Position numbers and translations under genes: made by a program. The notes under the pieces were generated by a model, which was not told where the DNA came from, searched no databases, and saw only the letters and a list, made by a program, of their open reading frames with translations. Source: Magallana gigas (taxonomy: Eukaryota). Taken from it: 64,000 bases of DNA. Positions 18,054-63,477 of the stretch are shown here, in pieces (positions within the stretch are counted from its first letter, which is position 1; the number at the start of each line of letters is the position of its first letter). Location of the stretch: positions 4,340,001 through 4,404,000 of the forward strand of contig NC_088855.1 of assembly GCF_963853765.1 (NCBI RefSeq), given 5' to 3'.

Positions 18054-21000
18054 GGTTTCTTCCAGCATGTTTCTCCTGGGTTACTGTATATCAACCATAT
18101 ACAGTTGTTTTGCCATTTCAGCTGATTCCTGCATCATGAATTCATTATCAATGAAACACGAGCAGAAATCATTTGCAGACCTTCTGCTTGAGGAACGAAA
18201 TATGATTTTTTTTAATTTGGTTTTCAATCAATCAAATTCTGATAAATTTGTGGAGGAAAGAAAATTAGAAAGATGGGTTTGGGTTGCCAACGACTATCGA
18301 TATATTTTGAGTTATCCTGAAGATGTGGATGTTTTCAGCTTTGGTTTATTGAAAGCTAAACAAGGTACCATAGAAGTGGAAATAAACATGGAGAATCTAA
18401 CCGAAGCTTGTAAGAGTCATTTCAATTCCTACTTGGCTCAACATATTTCAAAGATTGTACAGAGAAACAGTTCAATCACAGATAACGCCTTCAACCCATC
18501 TGAAGGATACATATGCCATTCTAAGCTTGAAATTGGCAACTTGAAACAAAAAGTCAGCGATTTTTCCGCTGTTAAACTTGGGTATCAATTCTGGTGTTAC
18601 ACGGACAACAACACATGTGCGGTTGTAGAGAAGTCATATGTAAACTACATAGTCATCTTTATAATATTTTTTACCTATTGTTTCTATCCCCTTGCAATAG
18701 AATCCGCATTTTATATAGAAGATAAAAAAACGGTTCAGGGTTCATATTATATGTCCGAGTCTCCCTATAGTCCTTCAGTGTTTTGTAAGCGAATTCTTTT
18801 CGCAGGAAATAATAAATACCTAGCAACGCTGCGTATAATATCATTAGTAACAGCCCTAACAACTGGAATTTATTACATCAAATCAGAGGTTCATGACCGT
18901 TGTAACTGTTTGTTGAGGTCTTCAAATGATAATCAAAGTTTTCAGCATGCAGAAAATATGTATATCAACAATAAATTTGCTGTAGCTTTAGGAGTTATAC
19001 AATTTCTGATGATCAATATATGTGTTCTGGTAAATTCTAATGGTATTTTAGATGATTTCATTATTTTGGATACCACAAACAGTTGTAAACAAGGCACGTT
19101 TTTAAAAACAGTGAAAGTCTCTGAATTTTTATTAGAAGATGACGAGGAAAGAAATCAAGACAAGGAACAAATAGAACAGAGAAATAATTTAGTGTCCCGA
19201 AAAATTCAAAAAATATTTCTTGTACTGACTTATTCCTTTTGGTCAAAATTATTTTTCATTAATAGTTGCACACGCTCATGTTGTTGTAATAAAGACAACG
19301 GTTGCGTATGTTTCAGTGTGCGCATACAGTCAGGCATTTGTTTCTTTATAAATGTTGCCCTCGTGTTAGGTAGTACGTTTTGCCCTTTGGTTTCAAATGT
19401 TTACATATTTTTTGTCAATTTCTTAAATGTAGTAACTTGTAAAGGATGTAAAGCATTAATACCGTGTGTGGAAAAATGTCAGAAAAGCGAAATTAAAGAT
19501 CAAATACCAAACAAAAATGGGGAAAAAGATATCAGTAGAACAGAAGATGTAAACATAGGAATAGTTGGCGAACCGATTGAGAACGTCGGAATTGAAAATG
19601 TTAACTTAGAAATATGCGATGAACAGAGTAAGCACACCGGTAATGAGGAAATTTGTAAGGGAGAAATAAACGAAAATGTTAATGATATTTCAAAGACTGA
19701 GTCTTGTAAGAATTTCTGGTTACAGTCATTTTCTCACGGCATTACGATTTTTCTCCTTGTTTTGATGTACAAGTTATCATTCAATATCTTTTTTTGTGGT
19801 TTGAGCTATGTAATACAATTCTTTATATTTACATTGTTACTGGCTGTGCCTCATTTTCCAATTCAATATTATGTTTACATTATTTTTTTTACATCTGTTA
19901 TCATTTATATTTCCAGGTTTGTTTTTCAATTCATCAAACTTTACAGAAATTTATTGGAAACAATTCTCGAAATCCAAGAGCAAACTAGTATTCCAATTAA
20001 TCATTTTGATAGGATCGTTGCAAAACACTTTCCTTTATCTAACGAACTGTTTTACTTGCTTGTGAAAATAATGCTTTCGGGTCTATTTTTTGCAATAATA
20101 TATGATACAATGCAGAATGTAGGTTATATAAGATTTGGAGCACAGCCAGATTTGACTACTATTATTTCCTTGATTTTTTTATTTGGACCACCACGTATAG
20201 TAGAGGCAATGTTGGTGAGAGACTTTACAAGTCGTGTTCACATGAAAGAAAAGGAAATTAAAGATGAACTTGTAAAAATTAAAGCGGAGAAGGATACTAA
20301 AAGATCAAAGTCTAATAAAACAATGTCAATTCTTCATGCAGTTTTAACTGAAGAAGAGAGGGAACTCACTTCTGTGAAAAAATGTATAGAATGCTGGAGA
20401 AAAGTAAGACCCGGAGAAGCATACACAACAGAAGAGAAAACACCTGGATGCTGTCTTTGTATTTTCAGCTTGCTGTGTTGTGGCTGTTGCAACTTTGCGT
20501 TTGATGATAAAGGAAATAGTAAATGTTGTGTCAAATTGAAAAAAAAATCCAAAACAAAAAAGAGATTTGAAGAGGAATCAACCACATCGAAAGAGGAAAC
20601 ATCCACATCGGAAGAAGAAACATCCGAAAAACCCACAAACAACCGTTGTAATTATGTACCAGACTGCTTTTGGTGTAGGTGGTTAGGCATGTTTTTCTGT
20701 GGCTGTTGTAATTTTCCGTTAGACGATGAAGGAAATTGTAAATGTTGCGTCATATTGACAACAAATGCCAAATCAAATAAGACAACCGACAGCTCTGAAG
20801 AACATTATAAAATTCCGTGTTTATGTGTAAAAGACTGTCTAAACAAAGACACTGGCGAAAACCCTGAAGAGAAAATGAATCTTTTTAACGAACTTAAAAC
20901 AGACACTTTATACAAAATAACAGTAGATACTGTTGATGAAATCAGACCCCGCATCATATACAATGCCAAAGCTGAAATTATAAACGACGGCATAATAGAG

Positions 21001-21534
21001 CTTGAAAAAATAAGCATTTCAGATAAATCCGATGAAAACAAACAACGAAATGAAAATAACAGTAATGAAACTAGCATAGAAAAAAGCAATGAAAGCATTA
21101 ACAATTGTTCGGAAAATGAGCTCAGTACAAAACCTAAAATAATAGATATTGTATCCCAAAAAGATGAACATGACAATGGAAAAAACAACGCGTTCGGCAA
21201 TGCAGGAAATGCTCGCACCGCAGACGCTGCCGATGAAAAATTACAACAGCATGAAACCAGCAACAGTAATGAAACTGGCAACGAAAGTGTTAAGATCGTA
21301 TATGAACGTTCTGCAATTGGACCCTTTGCAAAACCCGGTACTAAAAATAAAGTTGCCGCAATAATTGAACATGGTGCCAGTAAACCAAGCCTCATTAAAG
21401 AAGAAAATGATAATCACTTAGACAAAGAATCTGAAAATCAAGACAACGAAGAACATAAAGGAAAAGACATTGAAGATACTAAATATAAAGTCGATGAAAG
21501 CATTGAACTTCAATCTTTTAAAACTAAACTCTAA
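18054..21534 (+). CDS. Paralogue A main exon: uncharacterised multi-pass membrane protein, 1160 aa when spliced to AT at 2154-2155
   Basis: 3.5-kb uninterrupted ORF behind acceptor gtatttattacag|G. Hydrophobic N-terminus (MVSSSMFLLGYCISTIYSCFA), WVWVANDYRYILSYPEDVDVFSFGLLKAK motif, about 8-10 hydrophobic segments, FLFGPPR motif, Cys-rich modules and a long acidic Asn/Glu-rich tail. Homologous to three other copies in the window. AATAAA near 21626. Confidence 0.92.
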
Positions 21535-22199
21535 TCAGAAAATGAAAATAAGCAAAAGCCCAGAGCAAACGATACTTGAGAAATTAAATTCATAATTTTA
21601 TTCCATGATAGATGAATTATCGAAGGAATAAAAAAAGACAGGTAAAAATGGACACTTGCTGCGGTTAACACTATACTTAAAATGACGCAAAAAACAAGCA
21701 ATGAACTGGTTTGACCAAATGTAATTTCTGGATAAATATGTACATATAATACTATCATTTAAATCACGTGATCGGAAAACTGTTTTATATTTTTAGTTTT
21801 TTAGATAACGATCAACTGATACTCAATATTTTTTTTTTTGCTTGTTAAGAGTTTTTGGATGAGTCTGGCCCCCCACTTTCAAAAACGATGCTACGTGCCT
21901 GTACTGAAAATAAAATTTAAAGTAAAAAAAGAAATTCTACCCCAGGGCCAGGGTGCCCCTAAAAGAATTCTACCTTAATTTATTCCATAGAACAGAACTT
22001 ATCAAAATATTCTAGTTTTTCTTTTAGAGGCAAGCCGGTCCTGAAGGATATCTAGGCCAAAAACCATGCAGAAATATATTATTTTACTGAGAAAATGCTG
22101 CTTTCGCCAACTTTGAAGACTAATAGTTAAACTGCAAGAGCAATATGATAGGTTCAAAATGCAAATTCGAAAATTTTAAAAATATACGTATACGATAGA

Positions 22200-26018: not shown

Positions 26019-28318
26019 TTCCTATTGTTAATTAATCGGTTAAGAAATTTAAACCAATGTTTTAGAAATCTGCTCCTTTGTTTTATGATGGCTACAGCGC
26101 TAGCTCACCAATCTTATTAAAAATAAGCTTGTTGACAAAACTATTAAACAAGAAACAGTCAAAAGAAGTCATGGACATATGGAGAAGCTATGTACACGCC
26201 GAGTCTATAACACTTTCGGGATCTCAGCCGACGATGCTGATATAATTGATGTTTTGAAAACTAGATTCAAAGAATGCTGTGAACCACGTAAGAACTTAAC
26301 ATACATCAGACATGTGTTTTTCACGCGGAACCAGGGTCCGGATTAACCCATAGACAATTACTTGAAGGATTTGAAAACCAAAGCGCAGCCGTGTGAATTT
26401 GGAAATTTATCTGACGGACTAATCAGATAGAATAGTTTGTGGAATTCATGATAAAGCGTGTCGTGCACATTTACTCAGAGAATCGAATTTGATATTGGCG
26501 AAAGCTATCGATGTATGTAGGGCTCAGGAAATGAGTACAAAACAGTTAAAGTCCCTGAAAGTTAGTGAAGAACAAACAGTAGCGGCGACAAGTCAGTCAA
26601 AAAGTGGACGAAAGGTCAGCTCGCAAAATTATAGTAAACATACAAAACATGCAAAACAAAGAACTGGAAATCAAAGGCCGGACAGTACTGATGGAAGGTC
26701 ATGTTTTAATTGTGGAAGAAGACACAAGAAAGATGCATGTCCTGCATTTGGGAAAACTTGTCATCATTGTCAGATAAGAATCATTTTGCGAAATACCGTT
26801 TGACAGAATCATCATACAACTCAAAGAAAATTCACACCGTTGGAGTACCAGACGATGAAGACTCGTACGAGGATACAGAACTTTTCATTGGAACCATACA
26901 GATTAACACAGTGAATCAAGACCAGAGAGATTGGATTGAAACCTTGACCATCAATGACCACCATACAGACTTTAAGTTAGACACAGGTGCCCAAGCTAAC
27001 ATTATTCCGAAACATGTCTTTACAAGTTAAATTTGAATGACCAACACCTGACAAAGACAAGCGTCAAGTTGGTTTCATATGGCGGAACTGAAATTACATC
27101 GAAGGGTATCAAGACTTTGGAGTGTTCTGTGTGTGGCGAAAAGTACGTCTTGTCATTTTTCATAGTGGATGCGAATACTCAAGCAATTCTGGGAAAGAAG
27201 GCCTGCACAGAAATTTGATCTATAAGGAAAACCTACTAAAATCATATGAAGATGTTTTCAAGGGACTCGGAGAACTTCAACATTGACGACACTGTTACTC
27301 CAGTCATTCATCCACCGAGGAAGGTCCCTGTCGCACTCCGTGATAATGTGAAAAACGGAACTTCTGAGAATGGAACAGTTAGGAGTTATCGCGAGACGAG
27401 ATGAGCCCACCGATTGGGTACACAGTCTGGTTACAGTCCGTAAACCAAACAAGGTAAGACTTTGCATTGATCCAAAGGACTTGAATCGTGCAATTAAGAG
27501 AGAGCATTACCACTTAAAAACAGTCGACGAAGTGATTGAAAACCTTCCGCAAGCCAAAGTGTTTTCGAACCCATGGATTTTGGCACATCAAACTTGATGA
27601 GCCCAGTTCAAAGCTGTTGATATTCAATACCCCATTTGGTCGGTACAGATACCTGCGTTTACCATTTGGAGTAAGCTCTGCAGCAGAAGTGTTTTCTAAA
27701 CGAGTTCAAGAGATGTTTTTAGACTTAAAGGGCGTAGAGTGCATAGTAGACGACATCCTAGTATGGGGAGAGACCATTGCTAAACACGATTCCCGGGTAC
27801 AACAGATGCTACAAAGATGTCGCGAAATGAACTTTAAGTTAAACAAAAGCAAAGTGGAGTTCCATATACATGAAGTGAGGTATATCGGACATTTGATTAT
27901 GAACAGTGGTATTAAGGTAGACCCTGAAAAAGTACGAGCGATAGTAGACATGCAAGCACCAAAGGACGTGCCAGGAGTCAGGCGCATTTTAGGCGTCGTA
28001 CAATATGTAGCTAAGTTCATTCCGAAATTGTCTGATGTGACTGCACCACTTCGTACACTCCTTCAACAAGACGTCGAATGGCATTGGGATACACTCAGCA
28101 GGAAAGTTTCGACAGACTGAAACAACTAGTCTCCAGCGCAGCAGTGCTCAGTATATATGATGTGCACAAGCCTGTTACAATTTCCGATGACGCAATCTCC
28201 AAGGGACTTGGCGTAGTCCTTCTCCAAGATGGACATCCGGTAGCATTCCAGTTCGAGGGCTTTAACAGAGACACAGAAGAGGTACACTCAGATTGAACGT
28301 GAAATGCTAGCTATCGTA

Positions 28319-28524
28319 CGGTGGTTTCATTAATATTCAAGAGTATCAATTTTCGTGGAAAAATTGAAAATCACAGTTTCAAGGGTACGTAAATTCGTGG
28401 CCAATGGCCCTATTGATACACAATATTAATAGGTATTGCACTTTATTGAACATTAAATTTCATGGATCAACTTAACAGCAAAATCCACGAAAATTGGTAT
28501 TCAACGAATATTGATGAAACCACA
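28319..28524 (+). mobile_element. ~205-bp MITE inserted in the Gypsy RNase H region
   Basis: TIR gtggtttcattaatattc / gaatattgatgaaaccac (17/18). Gypsy coding flanks EMLAIV on the left and RKVTMET..KPL on the right. Confidence 0.85.
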
Positions 28525-30198
28525 TGCCGAAAGGTGACCATGGAGACGAATATATATAAACCCCTTGTCGCGATCTACCACAAACCACTGTATCGAGCGA
28601 CACCTAGACTTCAACGAATGCTTATGAAGTTACAACGCTATGACCTGAAGTTAGTGTATGTACCAGGAAAGGATATGCATATTTCAGATGCATTGAGTCG
28701 GTCTTACCTGCAAGAAACTCCTGAGATTCTAGTGGATGTTGAGGTCGATGTTGATTCGATTGAGGCACAACTACCCGTGTCTTCAGCAAAACTACAGCAA
28801 CTCAAAAAGGCGACTGCTGCTGATGAGACATTTCAAACGCTGAAAAATACCGTTTTGATTGGTTGGCCAGTCGACAGATCAAGTGTGCCATTGAACATCT
28901 TACAGTATTGGAACTACTGTGATGAAATTACTGTCATCGATGGCCAACGACTCATGGTGCCAATCAGCTTGAAAAAAGAAATGTTCAATAAGTTACACAA
29001 AGCAACGTTACCCAACATGGGTATAGTGAAAACACAGACAAGAGTACGACAGCTGTTGTTTTGGCCTAAAATGAACCAGGACATTGAAAACTTTATGGGA
29101 CAATGTGCAGTTTGTAACAAGTACAGGAATTCCAACTGCAAGGAACCTTTGATATCACAGGAGATGCCTTCACGTCCATGTTCAAAAGTTGCTACAGATA
29201 TGTTCCAGTTTAAAGGCTCTGAATACTTCCTGTGTGTTGACTACTACTCCAAATTTCCTGAAATTGTCCGTATGTCGTAAACTACCAGTTCACAAACAAT
29301 CACATGTTTCAAATCTCTGTTTGCTCGTCATGGCATTCCGACAGAACTATTTACGGTAATGGACCTCAGTTCTCGAGTTATGCATTCAGGAAATTCGCAA
29401 CTGAGTGGGTCTTCATTCACACCACCTCAAGTCCCAGATACACGCAATCGAATGGCCAGGCGGAGAGATGTGTCCAGACCGTCACGAACCTGCTCAGAAA
29501 AGCTGACGAATCCGGAGGCGAGATCTACGCCAATCTTATGAACTACCGCGCATCGCCGATTGACGGAATAGGACTGTCACCATCGCAGCTACTCATGAAC
29601 AGACAGTTGCGTAAAGTTACCAATCACAGCTGACTTGTTGAATTCGAATGCTGTTGAATCCTGCAAACCTCAACTTATTGCACGCCAGGTGAAACAAAAG
29701 TACTAGTATGACCGTCATTCCGGAACGTTACCCAACATCAACAAAGACGAAATAGTTCGCGTACAGAAAGATTCAAAACAGTGGGAGCCAGCCATAGTAG
29801 ACCAGAAACTTGCAGACAGATCGTACATAGTCCGCACGGGTGACAATCAGCTATACCGCAGAAATCGCAGACAACTTCTGAAGACCAGAGAAACTACTCT
29901 GCCGTCTGCCGTCTCTGATCATTCCGAAACAATGTATGACGCACCACCACAGAGTCATTCAGAACCCGATCCGCCAAACACCACACCTGCGAAACCAAAC
30001 CCACATGAAAGTGCTGCCACTCCACACAGAGAGCGCAGACCACAGCGAACACTGAGACAACCAAAACATCTGGAGGATTTCATTTGTAAACAAACTGTTA
30101 ACTGGTTGATACATACGTGTTTATGGTTAGACATGGTTTTTTTTGGTTCAATATTAGTAATCTTTTCAAGAATGGAAAATATTTTTTTAAAGGGGAGA

Positions 30199-30339
30199 TG
30201 TTATGTTATTGCATTATTATTTGTTTATTGACATAAGCGACAGTCTGTATCAAAATGATTATCTGTGATGTAAGCACCTTGTCACGTGATCTTTTGAGTA
30301 AAGAGTTTGAACGCCATTATTAAGTGTTGTGACTTTACA
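30199..30339 (+). repeat. 3' LTR of the Gypsy element (ends at CA 30338-30339, or alternatively CA 30348-30349)
   Basis: Starts TG directly after the polypurine tract. The sequence beyond it aligns to paralogue D coding sequence. Confidence 0.7.
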
Positions 30340-30582
30340 AAAATAAACATTTTGAATGTAACAGTAGAATGTGAGCGTCAATTTGACTATTACAATGCTC
30401 AATATGTTTCAGAAATGTAAATAATTGTACAAACTGATATTTTGAGTAAAGAGTTTGAACGCCATTATTAAGTGTTGTGACTTTACAAAAATAAACATTT
30501 TGAATGTAACAGTAGAATGTGAGCGTCAATTTGACTATTACAATGCTCAATATGTTTCAGAAATGTAAATAATTGTACAAAC
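30287..30582 (+). repeat. Near-perfect 148-bp tandem duplication spanning the LTR/host-gene junction
   Basis: 30287-30434 is repeated at 30435-30582. Confidence 0.9.
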
Positions 30583-31130
30583 CCAACTACAGAGTAGACT
30601 CATCCAAAGGGTATATATCAATTCCAAAAGTGTTAAAAAAACGTTGTGTGAGAATACATAAGTAATATATCTGCCGTCAATATCGGATATCCATTTACAT
30701 CTGTTGTGGAAAAATCGTATGCCAACCACATCGTTATCTTCATCGTATTATTTTACCTACTGTTTTTATCCACTTGCAATGTAAATAACATTTTAAATAG
30801 AGGACAGAAAAATGCGCCAAGGATTTTATTATATGTCGGAGTCTCCTTATGGTCCATCTGTATTTTGTAAAAGAATTCTTTTCGCAGGCAATAATAAATA
30901 CCTCGCAACATTGCGTGTTATTTTGATCGTAACAGTCTTAACAACTTTAGTTTACTACATAAAATCAGAAGTCCACGATCTCTGTAAATGCCTGTTAAAG
31001 TCTTCAAATGATAATCAGAGTTTTATGCACGCTGAAAACATCTATATTAACTCACCGGAACTTGTATTTTGGGGAGCTGTGCATTTCGTGGTAATAAACG
31101 TATGCATTTTGGTGAATTCAGATGGTATTC
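30340..31130 (+). pseudogene. Paralogue B: internal fragment of the membrane-protein gene, closest to paralogue D
   Basis: Aligns with about 61200-61870. ORF 30812-31135 differs from D at 8 of 105 residues. Upstream part has stops and a ~20-bp deletion. Bounded by the Gypsy LTR on the left and a HINE-like repeat on the right. Confidence 0.9.
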
Positions 31131-31281
31131 CTTGAATTTCTTCCTTTAAAGAAGGCGAGGAACTTCATTTTAACAAGCTTGAATTTCCGATGATGTTATA
31201 TGCTAAGTTTGGTTGAAATAGGCTAAGTTTTTCAAAAAAAGTCGAAAATGTTTAAATTTTACTGGCGAAAGTACGAACGGG

Positions 31282-31315
<34 letters not shown>

Positions 31316-31859: not shown

Positions 31860-33310
31860 CCCTTACCAAAGTAAAATTATTGCTGCAACAATGCCGCAAT
31901 ATTGCGGCTATATTGCAGCAACACATTTTTGTTACCAGAAACCAGATTTTGAGACTAGTGAAATGTTGCCGCTAGCTGCAACAACTTCTGGTAACATTTT
32001 GGCAATACTGCCGGAGTGTTGCCGCTAGCGGCAATAACTTCTGGCAACATTCTGGCAATACTATTAGAGTTATTTCTGTAAAAAATTATATTAACATGCA
32101 CCTAGAATATTGCCACTAGCTGCAACGACTTCTGGTAATATTCTGGCTACACTCAGTATCATACTGCCAGAAATAATTTTCTGGTAACATCTACATGACA
32201 TTGTATTTGATCATTTAAATCATGAACTAATGTATAAATTATATATATGATTCGATCTGGCAATACTGCTCGGCATCATATTTGATTTCTGCTTTAATTA
32301 TAATTTAAGGATCGAGAAGCCGAGCAGTGGAGGGGGGTTACAAAATTGTCAATTAATTATTTCGATATGATTTCAATTATAACACCTCAAAATTTGCCAG
32401 AAGTACAGAGAGTGATTTAATTAATCATGTTGATATTGACATTAAGCTAACATAATACAGAAAAGGATAAATACATTCAATACACGTAGATTAAATTTTG
32501 CAAATAATATTAGTTTTTATTTTGAATTAAAAGATTAATTTATTTTTTTTCTTTGCCTGTTGTTTTCTATACATTACATGCATCTACAATACAAAGACCT
32601 TTGGAAATTTTAAATCATCTATTTACCTACTGAACACTTGGAATATACATCTCTCTCATTATTACACACATGCTCCAAGTTTTTAAAAATAAAATATTTT
32701 ATAAAAATAAAAAAAAAATCCTACCTACCTACCCTAATTTTTTTGGTCAAGTGACAGGAAACAGGACTATTTTTTTTTTTGGCCTTATGCAAATGAATTG
32801 TCAGAAGGGTGTTGCAGCAAAATTTTTGCTGTAACACTTTTCTGGCAATATTGCTGCAATCTCAAGTATTGCCAGAAAGGTGTTGTCGCAACAATATGTT
32901 GCAGCAAAACTTTTGCGGCAACATCTTTCTGGCAATATTGCCGCAATCTCATTTGCATACGAAAAACGCTACTGCAGCAACATTGCCGCAATGTATTGCC
33001 AGAAAGGTGTTGTCGCAACAGTATGTTGCAGCAAAACTTTGGCGGCAACATCTTTCTGGCAATATTGCCGCAATCTCATTTGCATACGAAAAACGCTACT
33101 GCAGCAACATTGCCGCAATGTATTGCCAGAAAGGTGTTGTCGCAACAGTATGTTGCAGCAAAACTTTTGCGGCAACATCTTTCTGGCAATATTGCTGCAA
33201 TCTCATTTGCATACGAAAAACGCTACTGCAGCAACATTGCCGCAATGTATTGCCAGAATGTTGCTGCAGTATTGCTGCAATAATGCAAGAATGTGTTGCC
33301 TGAAGGGTTA
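31860..33310. mobile_element. Putative CCC-terminated non-autonomous TIR element with repetitive arms
   Basis: ccctt... at the left and ...gaaggg at the right. Both arms are made of gcaaca..tctggcaata modules with an AT-rich core between them. Confidence 0.5.
32807..33290. repeat. Minisatellite of 127-bp internally palindromic units, about 4 copies
   Basis: gcagcaaaac recurs at 32901, 33028 and 33155. Each unit has ggcaacatctttctggcaata and its inverse tattgccagaaaggtgttgtc. Confidence 0.9.
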
Positions 33311-35405: not shown

Positions 35406-35407
<2 letters not shown>

Positions 35408-36661: not shown

Positions 36662-39485
36662 GAATCCTTCCAGAGCGGTATGGTTTCTTTTCTGTACTGC
36701 CTTCGTATGCAGAGGTGTTGCTCTATCGAACAATAATTCCTGCATCGAAAATTCACTATCATTGAAACACGAGTTAAAGACTTTTGCTGATCTCGTACAA
36801 AACGGAAAAAATATTATATTTCTGAATCTATTCTTTGATAACTCTTCCTATAATTTAATTCCTCATGAGGACATGTCAAAGCAGTGGATATGGATAACAG
36901 AAGCTTATCAATATATCCTTAGCTACTCACAGGATGTTGATGTTTTCAGTTTTGGACTTTTAAAAGCAAAAAAAGAATTCCTTACTGTTAAAATTAGCGT
37001 TGCAAATCTTACCGAAGGCTGTAAATTCAACGTTGGTCAGTATTTGCTCCATCATTTTTCACATGCCAGAGAAGGAAGTAATACAACTACTGACACTATC
37101 CAAGAGACACCCAAAGGACATCTATGTTTTGCAAAACTCGAGAGGAACAAATTTGAGGACTTCATCAGTGATATTTCTGGCGTTAAAATAGGATTTCCGT
37201 TTTGGTGTTACACAGAAAACAACGAAAGCGTGTTCATTGGAAAGTCATATGTTATCTACATCGTCATTTGTATCATACTTTGCATGTATTCATTTTACCC
37301 GATCTTCATGGAAATGGCATTCTATGTGGAAGACAGGAAAGCTGACGATTGAAAATATTACATGTCTGATTCACCTTACAGTCCCTCGATTATCGGAAAA
37401 CGTCTTATATTCCTTGAAAATAATAAATACTTAGCAACACTTCGCATCTTAGTAATTGCAAAACTTTTAACATCCTTGGTATATTATCTTAAATCAGAGA
37501 TTTATCATTCCTGCAATTGTTCTTTAAAACTGCCCAATGACGACAAAAGTTCTCCCGACGTTGAAAACTTTTATAAAATCTTTTCATCTGAATTTGCCTT
37601 GGGCGTAATACATTTTATAATAGTTACTTCTTGTGTGTTTTTAATTCAAATGGAGGTTTTGATGATTTTATATTGCTTGATTTCACAAACTTGTGGAAGC
37701 AGTATTTTTTTATGACAACTGTACCTGTATCTGTGTTTCTCCCGCGTGCTTGCTTTAAAGTCTTACAAAATACAAAAATTATCCCTCCTTTTTTCCTACA
37801 GATTTTGACTCAAGTTTTATTCATTAATTCACGCAAATCACTTGTTAAACGTGGTTGTTTGTTGTTTCACATATTATGTCCAATCCAGTTTATTGTTAAC
37901 TTTGTGTTAGTTTTGTGTAGCATACTGTGTCCCGTTGTTTTTCCTGTTTATGTATTTTTTGTTAAATATAGTAGTATCGGTGTGATTTCATGTGTAATAA
38001 AATGGTGTTCTAAATATATCTGTTGTAAAAAATAGAAATTACTTCATATAGATAAACGAAATGGCATAAGGATTTTATGGAACATTGCATGCCATATATC
38101 TGCAATTGTTTACTTGTACTGCATGTATGTGTATACTTCGTCTTTCAATATATTTTTTAATGGCACGAGTTATATTGTTCAGTTTGTTATTTTTACCTTA
38201 CTTTTTGCCGTGCCTAGATTTTCAATTCAGTCTCATATTTATGTTATTTTCATTACGTCATTAGTATTTCATATTTTTCGTTACATTTTATCAATTTACA
38301 AAACTTTATAAAACTCTTTTAGAAACAGTTCTAAAATTACAGGGGGAAAACAGTATTTCAATACAACATTTTGATCTAATCTTGTTGTAACACTTCCCTG
38401 TTTCTAACGAAGGTTTTTATCTATTTCTACAAATAATGCTTTCTCCTCTATTCTTTATCATTATTTATGATACCATGCAGAAAGTTGGTTACATCAGATT
38501 CGGAGCCCAGCCGGATTTGACTACCGTCATCACCTTTTTTTTCTTTTTTGGACCACCACGTTTAATAGAAGGTCTTTTTGTGACAGACTTCACGAGTCGC
38601 GTTTATATGAAAGAAGAGGAAATCAAACAAGACATCGATGTTCTTTTGAAAAATGATGGATTGGATTCAAATTCATATCTTATGAAACAGGTTGAAGAAA
38701 TTAAAATATGTGTAAGGTGGAAAACTGATGGTCTTATCTGCAAAAAAATGAGATACGTCTGTACATTTTGTTTTGGATGTTTTCAGTGTCCAGTTGATGA
38801 CGAGGGATTTTGTGAATGTTGTGACTTATTAACATTAAACTCGGACCGACTAACAAGAACAATTATCAAAATCCCAACTGTTTGTTTATATAAGCGACGT
38901 AAAAATGAAGAAATATTCAATCGATGTGAGCCTCCTACCTGAGCAAACAATCCAAATTCAAATGAAACAATTAGTTTATATTTAAATGATTCAAACATCT
39001 TAACTTCAAGTGAATCAGGCTCTCAAAATACAACTGAATTAAAAACTGTTATTTCAATAAGTTCGAGCCATAGTGAACCAGGCGATCTGAATTCAATCGA
39101 ATCAAACAGTCCGCATCAAATTAGATCCAACATTTTAAACTCAAATAGTCCATCTCATGGCGAACCAGACAGCCCGAGTTCAAGACAATTAAACGGCTCA
39201 AATAAACGCAGATCAAACCTTCTAAATTTAACCGAATCAGTCAATACAAATCAGAATGGTTTCGAAGAGACAGGTTTGCATGTAACAACAATCCAAAGTA
39301 CAAATGGATCAACTTGTCTTATTCCAAGCGATTCGGAATCTTTGAATACTTGTTTAGAAGGACCTCGTCTTCAAAACGATCCTGTTTATGATAATAAAGC
39401 TGTGTCAAATAATTTGAAACTTATAGAATCCCGTTGTAAAAAGGTTTCGGACTTGACGATAGCCCAAATGATTACTAGTCTATGA
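36662..39485 (+). pseudogene. Paralogue C main exon: disabled copy of the membrane-protein gene
   Basis: Colinear with A and D (WIWITEAYQYILSYSQDVDVFSFGLLKAK, YMSDSPYSPS, FFFGPPRLIE, CFGCFQC..DDEGFCECC). In-frame TGA at 37350, TAG at 38033 and TGA at 38940, plus frameshifts near 37640 and 38285. A Ser/Asn-rich tail stays in frame to TGA 39483-39485. Confidence 0.9.
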
Positions 39486-40400: not shown

Positions 40401-40852
40401 TGTAACGTCACCGGAATTTACGGTGCCGGTCAGTTTTGGGTTCCTAATTTACTTGGTGATAATTACATCCGGTAAGCTGTTTCTGGGAGACAATATTTCC
40501 CGCGCGTCTGGGACGCACAGATCCATTTTGAAGACCCTCTACAGCGTATGGGACGCTTCGTCACCACTTTGCGTTGTGTTTATTTTTGTTTTGAGACTGA
40601 ATTTGACCTCTACATTAAGAATTAAACTTACTAAATTATAGATAAGGTATGAAAACGACTTTACTCTCACTATAGATAAACCAGATATAATAAACCAAAC
40701 CCAAAGTAAATGAAAACCAAGATTAACAACCCTTTATAAATTTATTATAACAAAATAGGAACACAAGGCAATAGCATATACTTAAAATCCCCCAACCCTA
40801 AAACCTAACTTTAACAGGGACCTTAAATAGACAGACGAGACGGGTCGGGACT

Positions 40853-41041
40853 CAGGAGAAAAGTAGCTAGCGAAACCAGCTGTCTCCCTTCCTCTCTCTC
40901 TCAGGAGAAAAGTAGCTAGCGAAACCAGCCGTCTCCTTCCCCCTCTCTGCTTCGGGAGAAAAGTAGCTAGCGAAACCAGCCGTCTCCTTCCCCCTCTCTG
41001 CTTCAGGAGAAAAGTAGCTAGCGAAACCAGCCGTCTCCTTC
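40853..41041. repeat. Four ~50-bp tandem units inside the LTR, duplicated at 44177-44365
   Basis: caggagaaaagtagctagcgaaaccagccgtctcc units start at 40853, 40902, 40953 and 41004. Confidence 0.95.
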
Positions 41042-41990
41042 GTCAAATAAGGACTTACACGGCTTTATATATGGGACAGAACAATAGACAAAGGTCATTA
41101 AAGATATTGGCTATCGTATAAAGTGGGCGTTACCAAAGTAATAGAATAAATTACATCGGGATCGGAATACTAATAATAATAAATAGAAACAAAATCCCGA
41201 TCTACCACATTCCTCCCCCCTTAAAGACAAATGGTATGCATTTGACTAAAATTAAGTGATGCATTTCAATCAAATTCCCTCAAAAACATACATAATATAA
41301 AATATAAACAAAACATAACACAATCAGAGGAATATGTCACATTGCTAAGTTCACCTTGGCTTCACAGTACCAGTCTCCATGGTCCTCAGCAATCACGAAT
41401 TGGAACACATTCCGGAATATAATACTAAGGGAACAACACAACATTTACATACGATTAACACAATATTCACGGATATCGCTGATTCCAGAATGAACACAGT
41501 GGATACCGGTATAACATCGGATATTATGAAGGCGATCAGACACTTGAAATATATGGAGTTGAATGTATCAGGTTCCAGTCCAATTCCAAACTTCACATTG
41601 GTCAACCTGGTGTCTGGATAAACTGCAATAAAACTGGTGAAAACATGGTTTGAAAAATCAAGAAAAATTATTAATAAACATGTCATAAATATCATAACTG
41701 AATCCATATATCAAATCATTACACTATCACACAGAACACGGAAATTTACAGTACATAAAAGTATTATGTTTACACGGGTTATTAACAGGCATACTATCCC
41801 AGTTTTGTCAACAAGATCGACAGAGGATAGTTACTGTTAGACTAACCTTCTAAATTTATGCGTGTTTAATAACCTATTAAATTTTACAAAAATCTAATTT
41901 AGTTTATAAGCCAAAAAATAAACAAATCAACGAACACGTAAATGCTACACCGCTCTAACTTTCAACTAACATCGTTATATCAAAACACAT

Positions 41991-43631
41991 TTAGCCAATT
42001 CCCTTCGGATGCTCGGGTCGGCAGTAAGGGTACAATACTGGGTCGACGGGCTTGTACATAGAAGTAGTACCCACGAACGACAACTGTAAGGGGATTTCAC
42101 CGCTCAGACAAGAATTAACTTTACCAGGGGGAATAGTTCTTCCATCGAGCTTCCATTCCAGGACAGAATCTGCCATGTGCTCGTTCTCTCTCTTTCCTGG
42201 TAAATCTGAACAAGTCTGAGAGTTTGATATAAAAACATTTGCTTCGGGGTTCAACGTTGACAACATTACGCCATTATCACTTAAATTGTAAACTGTCTGT
42301 AACTCAATGTCAGAACACTCGGATTCATCTATTACAGAATTACATGTAGAACTGGACTTAAAGTCAACAGGCACATCGTGTGCTACAGTAACTTCACCAA
42401 AACATGCATTTTCTTCAAAACATTGAACTTTACCCGGCGTTTTACCAGTTTCTGTTTGGTTCTGCGACTCTACCTCGAATGGTCGACTGTGCTCGGTAAG
42501 GTTTGAACGGCCTGAAACTAATGACCCGACCATGGCATTAGTCCCTGAAGGTTTTTCGAGAGTAAGAGTTGTTTCTAACGAGCTTAAATTTTCAGAACAA
42601 TGACCAACCAGATGGCACGATTTACTGGTAATATTATGTGAAAAGTTTTGGCAATCAGACATGTTTGAATTCTGTAAAGAATCAACTTCATCAACAAAAT
42701 GTTCACAAAACGCTTTCTGAATTTCTTCCTTAATAAATGCTTTTAAATCTTTAAAATCGCTGTCACTTGTGTGAACTGAAACAGGCATTTGGTTCGCAAC
42801 AAAAGTACTTACGAAACTCTCATATTCTATTGCTAGACCTATCGCTTTCTCAATTGTGGAGGGATGTTTAAACTGAACATGCTTTTGCAAATCAATATCC
42901 CCTAAACCAAAGATAAACTGGTCAACAATATGAGGTTCTAAGTATTTATAGGGAATATGTGGATAAGATTTTAAGGCTAACCTTTTCAAAGCATAACCAA
43001 AATCTTCGACTGTTTCCCCATTTTGTCTACGCGCTGTTTTAAACTCAACTTGGTAAGCTTTCACGTTTTCTCCGGGATTGAAATAGCTTTTACAAATATT
43101 TTTTAAAACATCATAATTGTCAGACTTTGTCAAAGGAATTTCGGATAACACATGTCTTGCAGACCCCCGTAAACTCATAATAAGCTGACTTGCACATTCT
43201 ATCTTACTCCACCCATTCCACACAGCAACCTGTTCAAACTGAATGAAAAATTCATGAATATCAAAACTACCATCAAATGTTGGCGACTTAATTTCTTTTC
43301 TATACTTTGAATGACGTGACTGTGCCAAATAATTGTCAGATTGCACGTGCGTTCGATTCTCTCTAGCCGTCTGACTAACATTTTCAAAAGCAAGACCATT
43401 TTTAAAATACTTCGTTTTGAGCTCTTTCTCTAAGAAATCACACTTTGCTGATAACTCTTCTATCCGTCTATCGATAGCATTAATTTCGCTGGACTTACCC
43501 AAACTTTCACAACGGACACCATTCCCGGTCTGAATATGTGCTGGGGAATAATTTCTCTCACGCAAAAATTCTCTATCATCTCTAAACATAACTGCATGAT
43601 GAAAAAATGCAGCGTAAAAAATCAAGTACAA
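41991..43631 (-). CDS. gag: Intact Ty3/Gypsy-type Gag-like protein (532 aa from the first ATG at 43589)
   Basis: Coiled-coil N-terminus, then PTFDGS..IHEFFIQFEQVAVWNGWS..ECASQLIMSLRGSARHVL and FIFGLGDIDLQKHVQFKHPSTIEKAIGLAIEYE capsid motifs. Only a degenerate knuckle (CHLVGHC). No stops. Confidence 0.88.
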   Translation of the reverse strand: MYLIFYAAFFHHAVMFRDDREFLRERNYSPAHIQTGNGVRCESLGKSSEINAIDRRIEELSAKCDFLEKELKTKYFKNGLAFENVSQTARENRTHVQSDNYLAQSRHSKYRKEIKSPTFDGSFDIHEFFIQFEQVAVWNGWSKIECASQLIMSLRGSARHVLSEIPLTKSDNYDVLKNICKSYFNPGENVKAYQVEFKTARRQNGETVEDFGYALKRLALKSYPHIPYKYLEPHIVDQFIFGLGDIDLQKHVQFKHPSTIEKAIGLAIEYESFVSTFVANQMPVSVHTSDSDFKDLKAFIKEEIQKAFCEHFVDEVDSLQNSNMSDCQNFSHNITSKSCHLVGHCSENLSSLETTLTLEKPSGTNAMVGSLVSGRSNLTEHSRPFEVESQNQTETGKTPGKVQCFEENACFGEVTVAHDVPVDFKSSSTCNSVIDESECSDIELQTVYNLSDNGVMLSTLNPEANVFISNSQTCSDLPGKRENEHMADSVLEWKLDGRTIPPGKVNSCLSGEIPLQLSFVGTTSMYKPVDPVLYPYCRPEHPKGIG

Positions 43632-44896
43632 AAATAATCTACTAAATATTTCAACTCACGTACAGCATGAATTCTCAAACCCACAAATCCATTACACAGC
43701 TAAAGAAATAAAAAAAAAAACCACAATACAATAGAAACTGACAACAAAAGAATTCAGCCAAGTCCGAATCACTGAAAAGGGCTCTCAAAGTGAGTAGCAC
43801 GTGCCACTGACCATTGTAGTACAAACCCTATCCTGGTCACGGTTCACCAAATAATGTAGCAGGTCAGTGCCGTATAGGTTTTTATCAGTACTTCGCGTTG
43901 TGTTTATTTTTGTTTTGAGACTGAATTTGACCTCTACATTAAGAATTAAACTTACTAAATTATAGATAAGGTATGAAAACGACTTTACTCTCACTATAGA
44001 TAAACCAGATATAATAAACCAAACCCAAAGTAAATGAAAACCAAGATTAACAACCCTTTATAAATTTATTATAACAAAATAGGAACACAAGGCAATAGCA
44101 TATACTTAAAATCCCCCAACCCTAAAACCTAACTTTAACAGGGACCTTAAATAGACAGACGAGACGGGTCGGGACTCAGGAGAAAAGTAGCTAGCGAAAC
44201 TAGCTGTCTCCCTTCCTCTCTCTCTCAGGAGAAAAGTAGCTAGCGAAACCAGCCGTCTCCTTCCCCCTCTCTGCTTCGGGAGAAAAGTAGCTAGCGAAAC
44301 CAGCCGTCTCCTTCCCCCTCTCTGCTTCAGGAGAAAAGTAGCTAGCGAAACCAGCCGTCTCCTTCGTCAAATAAGGACTTACACGGCTTTATATATGGGA
44401 CAGAACAATAGACAAAGGTCATTAAAGTTATTGGCTATCGTATAAAGTGGGCGTTACCAAAGTGATAGAATAAATTACATCGGGATCGGAATACTAATAA
44501 TAATAAATAGAAACAAAATCCCGATCTACCACATGTGCAAACACTAGTGACATGTGACATATCGGTAACTTTATATCAAATAATATGTTGACATTATTTG
44601 AAATGAACAATACTACAGATATTATAGATTGATCGTGATCATATGCTATGTCAAATATTTTTTCTGGTCAATTGGTGTTGAATATTTTCTCAATACCAGA
44701 TAACTCTGTTCTATGCATCAGTACTTTGAAAGGAAGCATTAATAATTTTCACGTATTTTGTGGTGTGCATGTGAATTTGAAAGTTAATTGTGCATTTTTT
44801 CTCATCTAACATGTCTAATGCCATTTTTAGCATGTGTATATATTTTCAAAATTTCATGGCATAATTTCATGTGAAAATCACTACAGTATTATCAGT

Positions 44897-47800
44897 ATGG
44901 CATCTGGTGGAAAACCCATACCCATAGTTGACGTGGAGGAAAGTGAAGAGGAGACAGTTCTTTCAGAGGAAGGTGAGGGAAAACGACTGAAAACGCAGAC
45001 AAAGAAAGGCATGGAACAGTTTTTGACATTTCTTAAGAAATATAGTTCTCAAGAACAAAAGGCATGGACAATGATTGAGAAATCTTAGTTGATATAGATG
45101 AAAATATAGACCAGAAGAATTTTAAAGACTTACGCAAGATTAAAGCAGAGCTTCAGAAATTTAAATGTACTTACTTTGATTGTGCAAATGACTTTCTTTC
45201 ATTTCTTAAAAGAACAAACACAAGAGAAAGTAATGAAGAATTTTCTATTCAAGAACCAAGATTTTGTAAACGTTCTGACATCATAGATCAGCTCATGAAC
45301 CGTATTGAGGATGCCCTTCTGGACGCAGCAGACACCTTATCACGAGCAAGTGGTTCCGAAGGATCCCGATCACAGTAGAAGTTCTGTCAGTGAAATGTCA
45401 AAGTCTCGTGTCCTGTTAAGACAGAAGGCAGAAGCAGAAAAAGCTAAATTAGCTTTCGTCAGACAGCAAGTTGACCTTCAAACCGAGAAGTCAAAAATTG
45501 AAGGACAAATACAAATTCTGAATCAAACGTGTTCAGCAGCAATCGCGGATGCAGAAGCCAAAGTGTTCGAAAGAGAAGAAAGTGAAACCAAAAGTGAAAG
45601 AAATTCAATCTTAGATAAACTACCCAAAGACAGAGGTCAGCGTGTTGCAGATTATGTGGAAAGTGTTTCTCGAGATCAAGAATCAAGTGTTCGATCACAT
45701 GTGAATCCAAAAATCGTTCAATCAATCCCCTCAAGTTATAACTTTGATGTTCCTTTAACTCAACCAAAGGAGGATTCAGTGGAAACTGTGACTAAATTCT
45801 TGTTAAGGAAGGAAGTGTTGTTATCCCGGTTTAGTAACTTTAATGATGAACAAGAGGCTTACAACGCATGGAAACTAAACTTTATCTCAATCATAAAGGA
45901 CCTGCAGATTTCAGAATTCGAGGAACTTCAGTTACTTGTGAGATGGCTAGGACCGGAGTCCTCTAGACATGCAGCGGACATCCAACAAGCAAACGCCGGA
46001 AATCCTGGAAGGGGACTACGTCAGATTTGGGCAAGATTAGATGAGAGATATGGGGCATTCGAACTCATCGATGATTCATTAAAATCGAAGTTGGCCGCTT
46101 TTCCGCAACTTACGATAAAGGACCCTAAAGAACTTTACAAACTGTCTGATCTACTGACACAAGTGGATGGTGTGAAGAAGAACCCTAAATATTCAGCAGC
46201 ATTATCCTATTATGACACCTCTCTTGGAATTGCACCAATAGTAAGCAAACTTCCTTATCAATGGAGAGAAAAATGGATCAACAGGGCCTCAGAATATAAG
46301 GAGCATCATAGTGTTCCATACCCACCATTTACATACTTTGTGAAATTTATACAAGACTTATGTCGTGTGAGAAATGACCCTGGATTTCAGTTCAGTGAAC
46401 CAACAAAGAAAGAGACTAAAACCAAAAACACTGGACAGATTCGTTCAAGAAAAACTGATGTTAAGCCTAGCAAGTCAACAGGACAAAGAAAATCATGCTT
46501 TTTAGAACATAGAGTTGAATCCAATCATAATATCAAAGACTGTCGTAAGTTTCGTACCCTTCCTATCGGTTCAAGGAAAAAGCTTCTCAAGGAAAATGGA
46601 ATTTGCTTTAGATGTTGTGATTCCAAAGAACACTTAGCAAGAGACTGTAATGTGAAATTAAGGTGTGACATGTGTCAAAGTGATAGACATTGTGGGGCCT
46701 TACATGTTAACATTTCCCAGGGCGGGGAGGATAAGGAAAATTCGCATGGCGGGGAGAACAGTATATCATCTTTTACAACTAACTGTACTCAAGTCTGTTC
46801 ACCCGCATTCAGTGGCAAATCTTGTGCAAAGATTATTTTAGTGAACATTTTTCCAGTTGGCCGTGAAGATTTAAAGAAAAGAGCATATGTGATTCTTGAC
46901 GACCAAAGCAGCAGGACACTTGCGAAGTCATCATTCTTTAACAAGTTCGGAATCAAGGGACAAGATATTTCATATACATTGTCATCATGCAGTGGTTCGG
47001 CCATGGTCTCCGGGAGACAAGCCTTTGATTTCGTTGTATCTTCAATACAGAGTGGCGAACAAATATACTTACCATCAATTATTGAATGTGATGACATCCC
47101 TGTTTCATACGAGGAGATTCCAACCCCAGCTGTAGTTAAACCAACCATACAAACATTTATCAGACTTGGAGTTTGATATCCCACCAATAGACTATAAAGC
47201 AGAAGTGATTCTTATTGGACGGGATGTTCCCAGTGCTCATCATGTGCTGGAACAAAAGATTGATAAACCAAACCTACCTTTCGCACAGCGACTTCCCTTA
47301 GGCTGGGCCGTTATAGGAGAATGTTGCCTAGGTAGAGTACATAGCCCACAACATGTGGCTGTGAACAAGACTCAGATTTTACCGTCTGGACGAGGAACTC
47401 ATTTTACCCCATGTTCATCAAATCTGAGAATCTCAACATATCAAGATGATACAGACATTCAGTGTTCGTGTGAGAATGGAATTCAACTTTCTCAGATCTT
47501 TGGACGCACCAAAGACGATAACATTCCAGGAATGTCAATCGAGGACAGAGAATTCTTAGAAATCATGAAGGAAAAGTGTCATAAAGATGAGAAAGGACAT
47601 TGGTCAGCTCCGTTACCATTCAAGTTAAACAGAAATAGACTACCTAACAACAGAGAACAAGCGTTGAAAAGGACTTATTCACTGCTAAAAACTAAGCGTA
47701 ATCCTGTGAAAATGAACTTAGCCATAAAGTTTATGGAAAATGTGTTTGATAATGGATTTGCAGAGGAAACTCCAGAGATCCAAGAGGGAGAAGAATGTTG

Positions 47801-60872: not shown

Positions 60873-63477
60873 GGTTTTCACCAGTACAATTTCCTTGATT
60901 TTCTGTATATCAATACATATATACAGTGGTCATTGTTTGTCAGCAAATTCCTGCATCGTGGATTCTTTATCTATTAAACACGAGAAAAAATTATTTAATG
61001 ACATGATGGAAAACGGAAAAAATATTGTATTTATGAGTTTAAATTTTAATCACTCGTATACGAATACCTTCCTTCAAAACAAAAAACTAGAAAGATGGGT
61101 ATGGGTTGCCAATGACTACCGATATATTTTGAGTTATCCTGAAGATGTGGATGTTTTCAGTTTTGGTCTGCTGAAAGCAAAACAAGATTCGTTAGAAATA
61201 AAAATAAACATTCTGAATATAACCGAAGAATGTGAGCGTCATTTTGACTCTTACATTGCTCAATATGTTTCACAAATTGTGCAAAATAGTACAAAACCCG
61301 ACTTTAGAAAAGATGCATCCAAAGGATATACATGCCATTCCAAAATTGTAAAAGACGTCGTGGGAGAATACATAAGTAATATATCTGCCGTCAATATCGG
61401 ATATCCATTCTTGTGCAACACCGACAACAGTACATCTATTGTAGAAAAATCGTATGTCAACCACATCGTTATCTTCATCGTATTATTTACCTACTGTTTT
61501 TATCCACTTGCAATGGAAATGGCATTTTATATAGAAGACAGAAAAATGCGCCAAGGATTTTATTATATGTCCGAGTCTCCGTATGGTCCATCTGTATTTT
61601 GTAAAAGAATTCTTTTCGCAGGCAATAATAAACACCTCGCAACATTGCGTGTTATTGTGATCGTAACAGTCTTAACAACTTTAGTTTACTACATAAAATC
61701 AGAATTCCACGATCTCTGTAACTGCCTGTTAAAGTCTTCAAATGATAATCAGAGTTTTCAGCATGCTGAAAACATTTATATTATTTCTCCGGAACTTGTA
61801 TTTTGGGGAGCTGTGCATTTCGTGATAATAAACGTATGCGTTTTGGTGAATTCAGATGGTATTCTTGATGATTTCGTAATTTTTGACATTTCAAATATTT
61901 TCAACCATGGTACGATTCTTAAAACCGTGAGAGTGTCTATATTTTTATCAATTAACGACGAAACGCAGAACCAACAACGACAGAAGAACGATCAACAAGA
62001 TGTTCAAGATGAGGAAGAATCATTCTCTTCTAAAAGAGAAAGCGTCAAAACAAAGCATTTAGTTTCGCACAAAATTCGAAAAATATTTCTTATCTTATCG
62101 TTTTCCTTTTGGTCAAAGATATTTTTTCTTAATAGTGTCTGTCGTAGAGATAACCAGTGCATTGTTCTTCTGCAGTCTGTGGTGTGTTTTCCTGTTAATG
62201 TCATTCTGGTGTTCGGTAGTACGTTTTGTCCGGTAGTATTCACTGTTTACGTGTTTTTTGTTAAATATTTGAATGTATTAATTGGCAAACTTATTTGTAA
62301 AATATTCAGATGTTGTAAAATATCCAAATGCTGTAAAATATTCCAATTGTGTAGAAGATCAAATTGCTGTGAAAGATCAAAATGCTGTGAAAGATCAAAA
62401 TGTTGTAAAAGATCAAAATGCCCTAATGCAGGAAAGAAACCCAGCAAAGCACTTGATGCATTTTTACAAACTGTATCTCACGTCATTACTATTTCCTATC
62501 TATTTTTGACATACAGGTACACATTCAATATATTCTTTTATGGTATGAGCTATGTTATACAGTTTTTTATATTTACTCTTTTTTTGGCAGTGCCTCATTT
62601 TTCTATTCAATCTTATATTTATATTATTTTTTTAACATCTGTAATAATTTATATCTCTAGATTCGTATTTCAATTTATAGACCTGTATAAAAGCCTTTTA
62701 GAGAAAATTCTTGACATACAAGATAAAACCAGCATACGGATCGAACATTTCGACGAAATCGTAGAAAAACACTTTCCTCTATCTAACGAAATATTTTACT
62801 TATTTGTAAAGATTATGTTTTCATGCCTATTTTTTGCCATTATTTATGATACCATGCAGACGGTTGGCTACATCAGAATCGGAGCACAACCGGACTTGAC
62901 AACTGTCATTTCCCTTATTTTCTTATTTGGACCACCACGTCTTGTAGAGGCATTATTGATGACAGATTTTACAAGTCGTGTTCACATGAAAGAAAAAGAA
63001 ATAAAAGACGACCTTGAAAAAACTATGGAAAGAAATACTAAAGAGAATGAAACTATCAAACCAATTTACCCTCCATTTTTTACAGAGAGGGAAAGGAAAC
63101 TTTGTTGCATAGAGTGGTTGATAAGCCAGTGGAGAAACGTAAGACCCGGTAATTCAAACGTAGCGCTCAAACATTCGGAATACCGTACGAGCAGTTGTTG
63201 TAAATATAATCCAAAGTTATTCTGGTTGCGGTGGTTATGCATGTTTTGCTGTGGTTGTTGCAACTGTATATTTGATAGTAAAGGATATTGTGAACATTGT
63301 GTTATATTGAAAACGGGTTTCAGATCACCTGAGAATTCCACTGATGAAGATGAAGAGTCAAAAAATGACAATGTACAAATTACTACCTTGAAAATACCAT
63401 GTGTTTGCATTGAACAGGAACTTACAGAAATTGAAATTAATGACGGGGAAGACACTGTAGATGAAACACGCTTCTGA
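60873..63477 (+). CDS. Paralogue D main exon: uncharacterised multi-pass membrane protein, 868 aa when spliced to AT at 56585-56586
   Basis: Uninterrupted ORF open from the acceptor, with no ATG before the end of the signal-like segment (VFTSTISLIFCISIHIYSGHCLSA). Same motif order as paralogue A. 7 x 18-bp Cys-rich repeat at 62296-62421. AATAAA near 63860. Confidence 0.92.

Follow-up and report, generated by a model that had tools for sequence, protein, structure and literature searches.

The 64,000-nucleotide stretch of the Magallana gigas genome analysed here (NC_088855.1, contig C3, positions 4,340,001 to 4,404,000 of the forward strand; hereafter the window) is AT-rich, with a GC content of about 32%, and carries a tandem array of genes for a predicted multi-pass membrane protein. 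A preliminary description of the array spoke of four same-strand paralogues: two intact genes, one pseudogene and one fragment. A tblastn search of the window with the first paralogue and a family-profile search of the whole 564-Mb genome agree with this, both returning exactly four copies on the plus strand, which are referred to as A, B, C and D (Table 1). They belong to an undescribed gene family of pteriomorph bivalves, and the nearest relatives of the proteins encoded in the window are found in Crassostrea, Saccostrea and Ostrea.

Table 1. Family copies, their main elements and associated repeats in the window (window coordinates), and paralogues elsewhere in the genome
Feature	Position	Strand	Basis or remark
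Paralogue A, intact, main coding exon	18054..21534	+	ORF (open reading frame), tblastn, profile search
A, ectodomain motif	18271-18360	+	sequence
A, YYMSESPY	18745-18768	+	sequence
A, YDTMQ..DLTT	20101-20160	+	sequence
A, FGPPR	20182-20196	+	sequence
A, two Cys-rich modules	20449-20538 and 20665-20757 (aa 795-824, 867-897)	+	sequence
A, tail end K-T-K-L	21520-21531	+	closes long acidic low-complexity tail
Paralogue B, dead D-type fragment	30488..31129	+	tblastn, profile search
Paralogue C, full-length pseudogene	36672..39485	+	tblastn, profile search
Paralogue D, intact, main coding exon after acceptor 60873/60874	60874..63477	+	ORF, tblastn, profile search
D, ectodomain (aa 20-186)	60952..61452	+	AlphaFold2 model, alignment
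D, membrane core (aa 187-688)	61453..62958	+	AlphaFold2 model
D, Cys-rich tail module (aa 775-805)	63217..63309	+	hydrophobic, CCGCCNC core, no Pfam match
D, C-terminal E-T-R-F	63463..63474	+	class I PDZ-ligand-type end
Ty3-type fragment (RVT_1, Integrase_H2C2)	27536-29280		just upstream of B
LTR (long terminal repeat)-retrotransposon-like unit	40852-44365		two near-identical 51-bp-repeat arrays (40852-41041, 44176-44365)
gag-like ORF, 546 aa	41991-43631	minus	between the 51-bp-repeat arrays
Pao/BEL-type retroelement	45305-50528	+	four consecutive, slightly overlapping ORFs; between C and D
Cluster of distant paralogues, larger than that of the window	C4:21,360,000-21,930,000		loci L013-L015, L017-L019, L021-L022, L024, L026, L028, L030, L034-L037
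Distant intact paralogue, single, ending S-C-V	C2:25,564,160-25,566,364		L012
Broken or split copies with stops	C8:4.24 and 4.69 Mb; C10:3.19 Mb

The open frame of A (18067-21534) encodes 1155 aa from an ATG at 18067 to a stop codon at 21532-21534 with no internal stop, and that of D runs for 860 codons from 60895 to a stop codon at 63475-63477. Both have one large coding exon, in keeping with the nearly intronless tandem array described before, and every motif quoted in that description is found in the order given. The closest named homologue of D, the C. angulata protein P0001, is only 80-84% identical to it, which points to copy-number or presence/absence differences, or to very divergent haplotypes, at the locus. 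C has at least four premature stops (37350, ~38030, 38388 and 38940) and at least four frameshifts (near 37644, 37745, 37800 and 38285). It runs about 540 nt past the last ORF visible to the earlier reader, and its C terminus still reads I-T-S-L. Where still in frame, C is 93-96% identical at the amino acid level to P0023, an intact Logan protein of 870 aa assembled from public runs, and is therefore a young pseudogene. B spans roughly the second half of the ectodomain through the third transmembrane (TM) helix, retains nothing after TM3, and contains 4-5 in-frame stops and one frame change; with 88.6% nucleotide identity to D and 98% amino acid identity to a Logan fragment, it is what remains of a D-type copy. 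The 5' end of the fragment falls within a tandem duplication of two 148-bp units (30287-30582).

There is no ATG ahead of the hydrophobic N terminus of D, which resembles a signal peptide. The main exon follows an acceptor with a polypyrimidine tract and the sequence CAG/G at 60873/60874, and the equivalent acceptor of A, at 18053/18054, coincides with the position at which the preliminary description had begun the cluster. P0001, a RefSeq model, has a Met followed by exactly the residues encoded after the D acceptor, and the transcript-derived relative P0007 begins M-M-V-S-S-S where the A exon opens V-S-S-S. We infer that a 5' exon supplies the 'AT' of a split start codon (AT/G), the rest of the coding sequence being one exon. 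As for transcription, 35-40% of the 31-mers of D are present in three runs labelled RNA. With reads placed on positions 58,000-63,900 of the window, contigs from two RNA runs cover 61.5-63.9 kb of the D region at ~98% identity, and one contig (1025 nt, 98% identity) extends 113 nt beyond the D stop codon. Read depth is zero over the non-repeat flanks at 58.4-59.2 kb and 60.56-61.5 kb, which argues against DNA contamination, and nearly all of the few poly(A) raw reads on D have their first mate on the minus strand, as fits plus-strand RNA in a dUTP library. The RNA coverage of D is sparse and in plus-strand orientation. Upstream of the gene, 49 copies of a 21-bp satellite occupy 58249-59288; the repeat that follows, ending at 60560 directly upstream of D, reaches an RNA depth of about 700 with many partial alignments and odd joints, and is probably a transcribed dispersed repeat.

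An exhaustive hidden Markov model search over 1.84 billion representatives matched 117 proteins, with E-values down to 0. The named matches, all 'uncharacterized', 'hypothetical' or 'unnamed', come from Ostreidae, Pinctada, Mytilus coruscus, Argopecten irradians and Tegillarca granosa; judged from these matches, the family spans five families of pteriomorph bivalves. A and D match the family profile over their full length (E=0) and share its architecture: a signal peptide, an ectodomain with four Cys and the motifs WxW and L.YP.D.DV.[ST]FGLL, and about 11 helices, with a Y..[DE]xPY loop, the motifs LY..LL and FD..FP, and a Lys in TM10. Pfam produced no match for A, D, ten distant relatives, all 26 sequences of a diverse alignment (with E<=10 allowed), the isolated ectodomain or the Cys modules, returning only sub-threshold noise (DUF3915, Di19_C and similar). 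Profile searches of all PDB sequences gave no match; SMSr appeared twice in them, at E 2-7, and was set aside since its PAP2 motifs do not fit. Word-indexed homologue searches with broad alignments recovered close relatives only and nothing new, and a literature search for the LOC identifiers and UniProt accessions of the family returned no paper. No named family had been recognised in the preliminary description, and Pfam, PDB sequences and structures, and Swiss-Prot models likewise show no relative.

Synonymous divergence (dS) between A and D is ~1.4, that is, saturated, and the duplicates are therefore old. The ratio of nonsynonymous to synonymous divergence (omega) is 0.21 over 826 aligned codons, and A and D are under purifying selection. 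The TM blocks, with an omega of 0.11-0.14, are the most constrained part, as compared to 0.27 for the ectodomain and 0.24-0.37 for the tail elements; with these values and a dS of this size, the label 'fast-evolving' given to the family does not suit the A/D pair. A maximum-likelihood tree contains an A-type clade, a D-type clade that includes the C. angulata protein, a C-type clade, a clade of unnamed Logan sequences and a separate Saccostrea and Ostrea clade with duplications of its own; support is strong at most forks, and the tree does not resolve the branching order among the clades. A broader profile, used to count paralogues genome-wide, found roughly 8-10 intact-looking and about 6 decayed copies in several clusters. 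The cluster on C4 alone has at least four open frames (811, 829, 880 and 845 aa) and at least three broken copies. The birth-and-death evolution proposed earlier is thus evident in pseudogene C, fragment B, the broken copies on C4, C8 and C10, and the clade-specific duplications in the tree. The lineage expansion proposed with it is modest, at about 8-10 intact-looking copies in 564 Mb, and so is the turnover. Copies arise by tandem duplication and are lost by decay, as with C and B, in a retrotransposon-rich stretch.

Such surroundings bring up a different account of the array, in which the copies are relics of mobile elements or viruses, or decaying ORFs that are intact by chance, and not a functional host family. 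The coding sequences are intronless and multi-copy, two of the four copies in the window are dead, and Ty3-type, LTR/gag and Pao/BEL retroelements lie between them all; the Ty3-type fragment may mark the event that truncated B. However, the retroelement domains, which in the Pao/BEL element comprise Peptidase_A17 and a weak integrase core, sit in separate ORFs between the family copies, and the family proteins themselves have no transposon domain in Pfam and no viral structural relative in BFVD. An omega of 0.21 has been kept over 826 aligned codons despite saturated dS, frames of 860 and 1155 codons are open, the inferred 5' intron position is common to A and D, D has RNA coverage, and members, both named and unnamed, occur in five bivalve families. 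An origin from mobile elements or viruses, or a lack of function, is largely refuted by this evidence and strikes us as highly improbable. Two further features of the window are a 127-bp tandem repeat at 32866-33258 (3.1 copies, 98% identity), which generates spurious overlapping ORFs of about 160 aa, and a run of 133 N at 3095-3227, an assembly gap or masked sequence.

The protein anatomy is given here in D numbering. Residues 1-19 resemble a signal peptide. The ectodomain that follows is a compact alpha/beta domain of ~165 aa with six predicted strands and six helices (pLDDT, the predicted local distance difference test score, about 90), in which WxW and L.YP.D.DV.[ST]FGLL are the conserved motifs. 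Cys 20, 113, 147 and 174 are conserved across the superfamily and presumably form two disulfides. There are on average 4.5 N-x-S/T sequons per ectodomain, and 5 in D. This concentration of sequons, together with the signal-peptide-like start and the conserved Cys, argues that the domain is extracellular or luminal. For the membrane core, 8-10 TM segments had been estimated from sequence; the AlphaFold2 model gives about 11 helices instead, at 187-215, 246-275, 299-321, 392-410, 421-444, 446-468, 518-542, 546-568, 571-595, 629-657 and 668-688. Two loops of the core, 322-391 and 469-517, are variable, and the one after TM6 (62296-62445, aa 468-517) consists of CC-K/R-S-K repeats (CCKxSK, CCERSK) in D and of a long acidic insert in A. 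Residues conserved family-wide are N435 in TM5, P446, P567, Y586 in TM9, K639 in TM10 (92%), P681 and E685. Conserved elements placed in the cytosol by the topology are a Y..[DE]xPY loop that follows TM1, an LY..LL stretch extending TM9 and an FD...FP helix that precedes TM10; within the oyster clade, the amphipathic DFTSRVHMKEKEIK helix beyond TM11 is a further one. Loops L1, L3 and L9 and the segment from TM11 to the C terminus are rich in Lys and Arg, L2 and L10 are poor in them, and these charges, taken with the odd helix count, fit an N-out/C-in path. A TVGY sequence in the TM10-TM11 loop of the oyster clade (62845-62904, D aa 651-670; A 20101-20160) was considered as a K+ channel filter and rejected: the loop is too short for a P-loop and the motif is not conserved outside the clade, and we judge the likeness to be a coincidence.

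The tail carries a Cys-rich module, a putative palmitoylation or metal-binding site, and then a disordered, low-complexity region whose length is highly variable between members. One module per protein had been reported; the module is present, but in A it is duplicated. The C termini are A KTKL, D ETRF and C ITSL, so that [S/T]-x-hydrophobic stands at the free C terminus in all three. More generally, the motif [D/E]-T-x-[L/V/I/F] closes 17 of the 22 complete proteins of the oyster clade, several of them with exactly DTRL or ETRL, as compared to a background of 3.1% for the PDZ-type motif within the same tails; a binomial P for this enrichment is indicative only, because the sequences are related. 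A PDZ ligand requires a cytosolic C terminus, in agreement with the odd number of helices.

A first AlphaFold2 run with 23 close sequences was unusable (pLDDT 52.8). A second run on residues 1-720 of D, with 116 sequences down to about 18% identity, gave a model with a pLDDT of 83.8 and a predicted template modelling score (pTM) of 0.81. With this model, nothing significant was found by Foldseek against the PDB (best E 1.7), in VIA searches of the PDB (wide and PDB-restricted), in AlphaFold Swiss-Prot (best E 0.8), in BFVD or by shape in the ESM Atlas, and a feature search of the ESM Atlas with the whole protein and with the ectodomain was blank. Pfam and AlphaFold with Foldseek, both proposed as checks in the preliminary description, give no confident full-length match to a characterised family. 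Real fold matches (E 4e-10 to 2e-5, probability 1.0) are found only in AlphaFold DB (AFDB) clusters named 'Uncharacterized protein', of 630-1090 aa, which align over the full length of the query (16-718). Clusters A0A2R2MPG3, A0A3S1AU39, A0A0B7AZA9, R7TC74, K1PHH2, A0A8B6CMM5, B3RL60 and A0A6J8F357 have the same predicted fold as D, but only 10-15% sequence identity to it, with TM-scores of 0.2-0.46 and no described function; we presume from the accession prefixes that they include proteins of other molluscs, an annelid, a brachiopod and the placozoan Trichoplax. To judge by the models, these unnamed proteins are true relatives of the family. The predicted fold is shared by none of the reviewed Swiss-Prot proteins searched, and as a confidently modelled fold without a characterised relative it is, on the modelling evidence, new.

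GT2 and chitin-synthase-like entries come up as weak matches in three independent libraries. This raises the question of whether the protein could work in the secretory pathway as a membrane-embedded enzyme, for instance one that transfers glycosyl or acyl groups and has mucus, shell matrix or lipids as its targets. Catalysis or metal binding would then fall to the luminal alpha/beta domain and its P-x-D-x-D motif, of which the D-x-D is indeed conserved across the family (D84 in 88%, D86 in 71%). GT-C enzymes likewise combine an 11-13-helix core with a luminal domain. However, none of the GT2-like matches reaches significance (E 2-6, probability <0.15, TM-score by hit no higher than 0.42), an ectodomain of ~165 aa is small for GT-A, the membrane part has no conserved His/Asp/Glu constellation, and a PDZ-ligand tail and a Cys-rich module would be unusual for an enzyme of the endoplasmic reticulum or Golgi. 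We consider an enzyme improbable.

Our preferred reading, which we hold tentatively, is that of a PDZ-anchored surface protein of channel, transporter or transceptor type, in which the ectodomain senses or binds and N435, Y586 and K639 make up a site in the membrane. The protein would span the plasma membrane, its N terminus exposed to the exterior and its C terminus to the cytosol, and would be kept by PDZ scaffolds at a specialised part of the cell surface, either apical or synaptic. The glycosylated ectodomain would recognise some external ligand or stimulus, and the functional site would consist of the conserved polar residues buried in the membrane, namely the Asn of TM5, the Tyr of TM9 and the Lys of TM10. 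Three considerations lead us to this reading: the membrane core is the most constrained part; a buried, conserved set of Lys, Asn and Tyr is seen more often at sites of transport or gating than in passive anchors; and tails with a PDZ ligand are characteristic of channels, transporters and receptors.

A rival reading is that of a non-conducting surface receptor or adhesion molecule, GPCR-like (that is, resembling G protein-coupled receptors) or tetraspanin-like, in which a ligand is bound by the ectodomain and the bundle of helices only relays this event to cytosolic partners via the Y..[DE]xPY loop, the DFTSRVHMKEKEIK helix and the PDZ ligand. The most conserved elements outside the membrane are indeed cytosolic in the model, two of the weak AFDB matches have been named automatically as GPCRs (E 0.08-0.13), and the picture of weakly expressed, intronless tandem genes accompanied by pseudogenes is reminiscent of chemoreceptor repertoires. 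The helices, however, number about 11 and not 7, no Pfam 7tm family is found among the 26 members searched, and the ectodomain is under purifying (omega 0.27) and not diversifying selection, which leaves a receptor of this kind unlikely in our view. Whatever probability these several readings do not take up goes to something else.

A number of observations weigh against a channel, transporter or transceptor. No ligand, ion or substrate signature was found, nor a homologue with a known role. Comparison of the helix blocks with hhalign detects no internal repeat, unlike in many transporters, and the TM10-TM11 loop, with its 5-21 aa, leaves no room for a P-loop pore. The signal peptide and the TM count derive from hydropathy and AlphaFold alone, and the 11-helix topology places outside both L4, which is rich in Lys and Arg, and the long Cys/Lys-rich L6; with these misfits, helices TM4-TM6 are possibly mis-modelled or miscounted. 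The PDZ-type end is mostly confined to the oyster clade, occurring in 3 of the 45 other long members. The RNA reads cover D thinly and with a 3' bias, and the 5' splice junction of the gene is not among the read joints shown for 58,000-63,900. The data do not discriminate among the sensory, immune and ion-transport roles listed in the preliminary description, and suggest a glycosylated multi-pass surface protein with a cytosolic PDZ-ligand tail.

A bolder proposal, for which we see rather little chance of being right in full, is that of a new superfamily of ~11-helix surface proteins, present in bivalves and, by fold, in annelids, brachiopods and placozoans, and absent from vertebrates, insects, nematodes and other model organisms. 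Its members would be ligand-sensing channels or transporters of 'ionotropic receptor' type, with a glycosylated alpha/beta sensor domain of their own and, in oysters, a PDZ anchor. To our knowledge, it is uncommon for a new fold of a membrane protein to be modelled confidently and yet have no characterised relative, and this one belongs to a family that is under purifying selection and present in at least five bivalve families. The lack of a counterpart among the reviewed Swiss-Prot proteins searched would explain why the family was never named, though mollusc genomes hold many unnamed lineage-restricted families. If the protein is a channel, transporter or sensor, it would establish a new class of devices for signalling or transport at the cell surface, in animals that are dominant in coastal ecosystems and in aquaculture, and would offer a way into the epithelial or neural physiology of oysters; should it prove a structural or enzymatic oddity, it would still be a new Pfam-type family and fold. 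We see in it a solid lead for structural and physiological follow-up, the role given to the protein here being a proposal.

Several known systems were compared with the family. The six-TM tetrameric channels Kv, TRPV and TRPML are excluded by Foldseek (E>1, TM-score <0.1), by the lack of a re-entrant pore helix and by the short TM10-TM11 loop, and the 11-TM PKD1-like proteins by the absence, in Pfam searches of the family, of PLAT, GPS or polycystin domains. For GPCRs of 7TM classes A/B/C/F, neither the Pfam 7tm models nor superposition on solved receptors revealed a seven-helix bundle. TMEM16/OSCA/TMC proteins (10-11 TM) have a similar helix count, and the alignments of one OSCA-like AFDB row and of TMC7 rows extend over the greater part of the membrane core; these AFDB/Swiss-Prot rows were rejected at E 0.6-2.4 and TM-scores of 0.1-0.25, with no solved member among the PDB structure-search matches, as were LYCHOS and MATE rows at E>=0.6. 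The GT2/GT-C enzymes (chitin synthase, ALG8, EmbB) resemble the family in combining an alpha/beta domain with a many-helix core, in a conserved D-x-D and in recurring weak matches. In the family, however, the alpha/beta domain follows a signal peptide, bears sequons and conserved Cys, and is extracellular or luminal and far smaller than GT-A (~165 aa vs about 230), with GT2 rows at E >=2 and no Pfam match. CFTR and the other NHERF-bound apical proteins show no homology to the family in the protein body, which has no ABC or other known domain, and it is the C-terminal motif alone that suggests PDZ binding. The likeness lies in that end: the DTRL of CFTR that binds NHERF is a classic class I PDZ ligand (D-[ST]-x-L), and the oyster-clade terminus [D/E]-T-x-[L/V/I/F], in some members DTRL or ETRL itself, would likewise act as a scaffold-anchoring tag.

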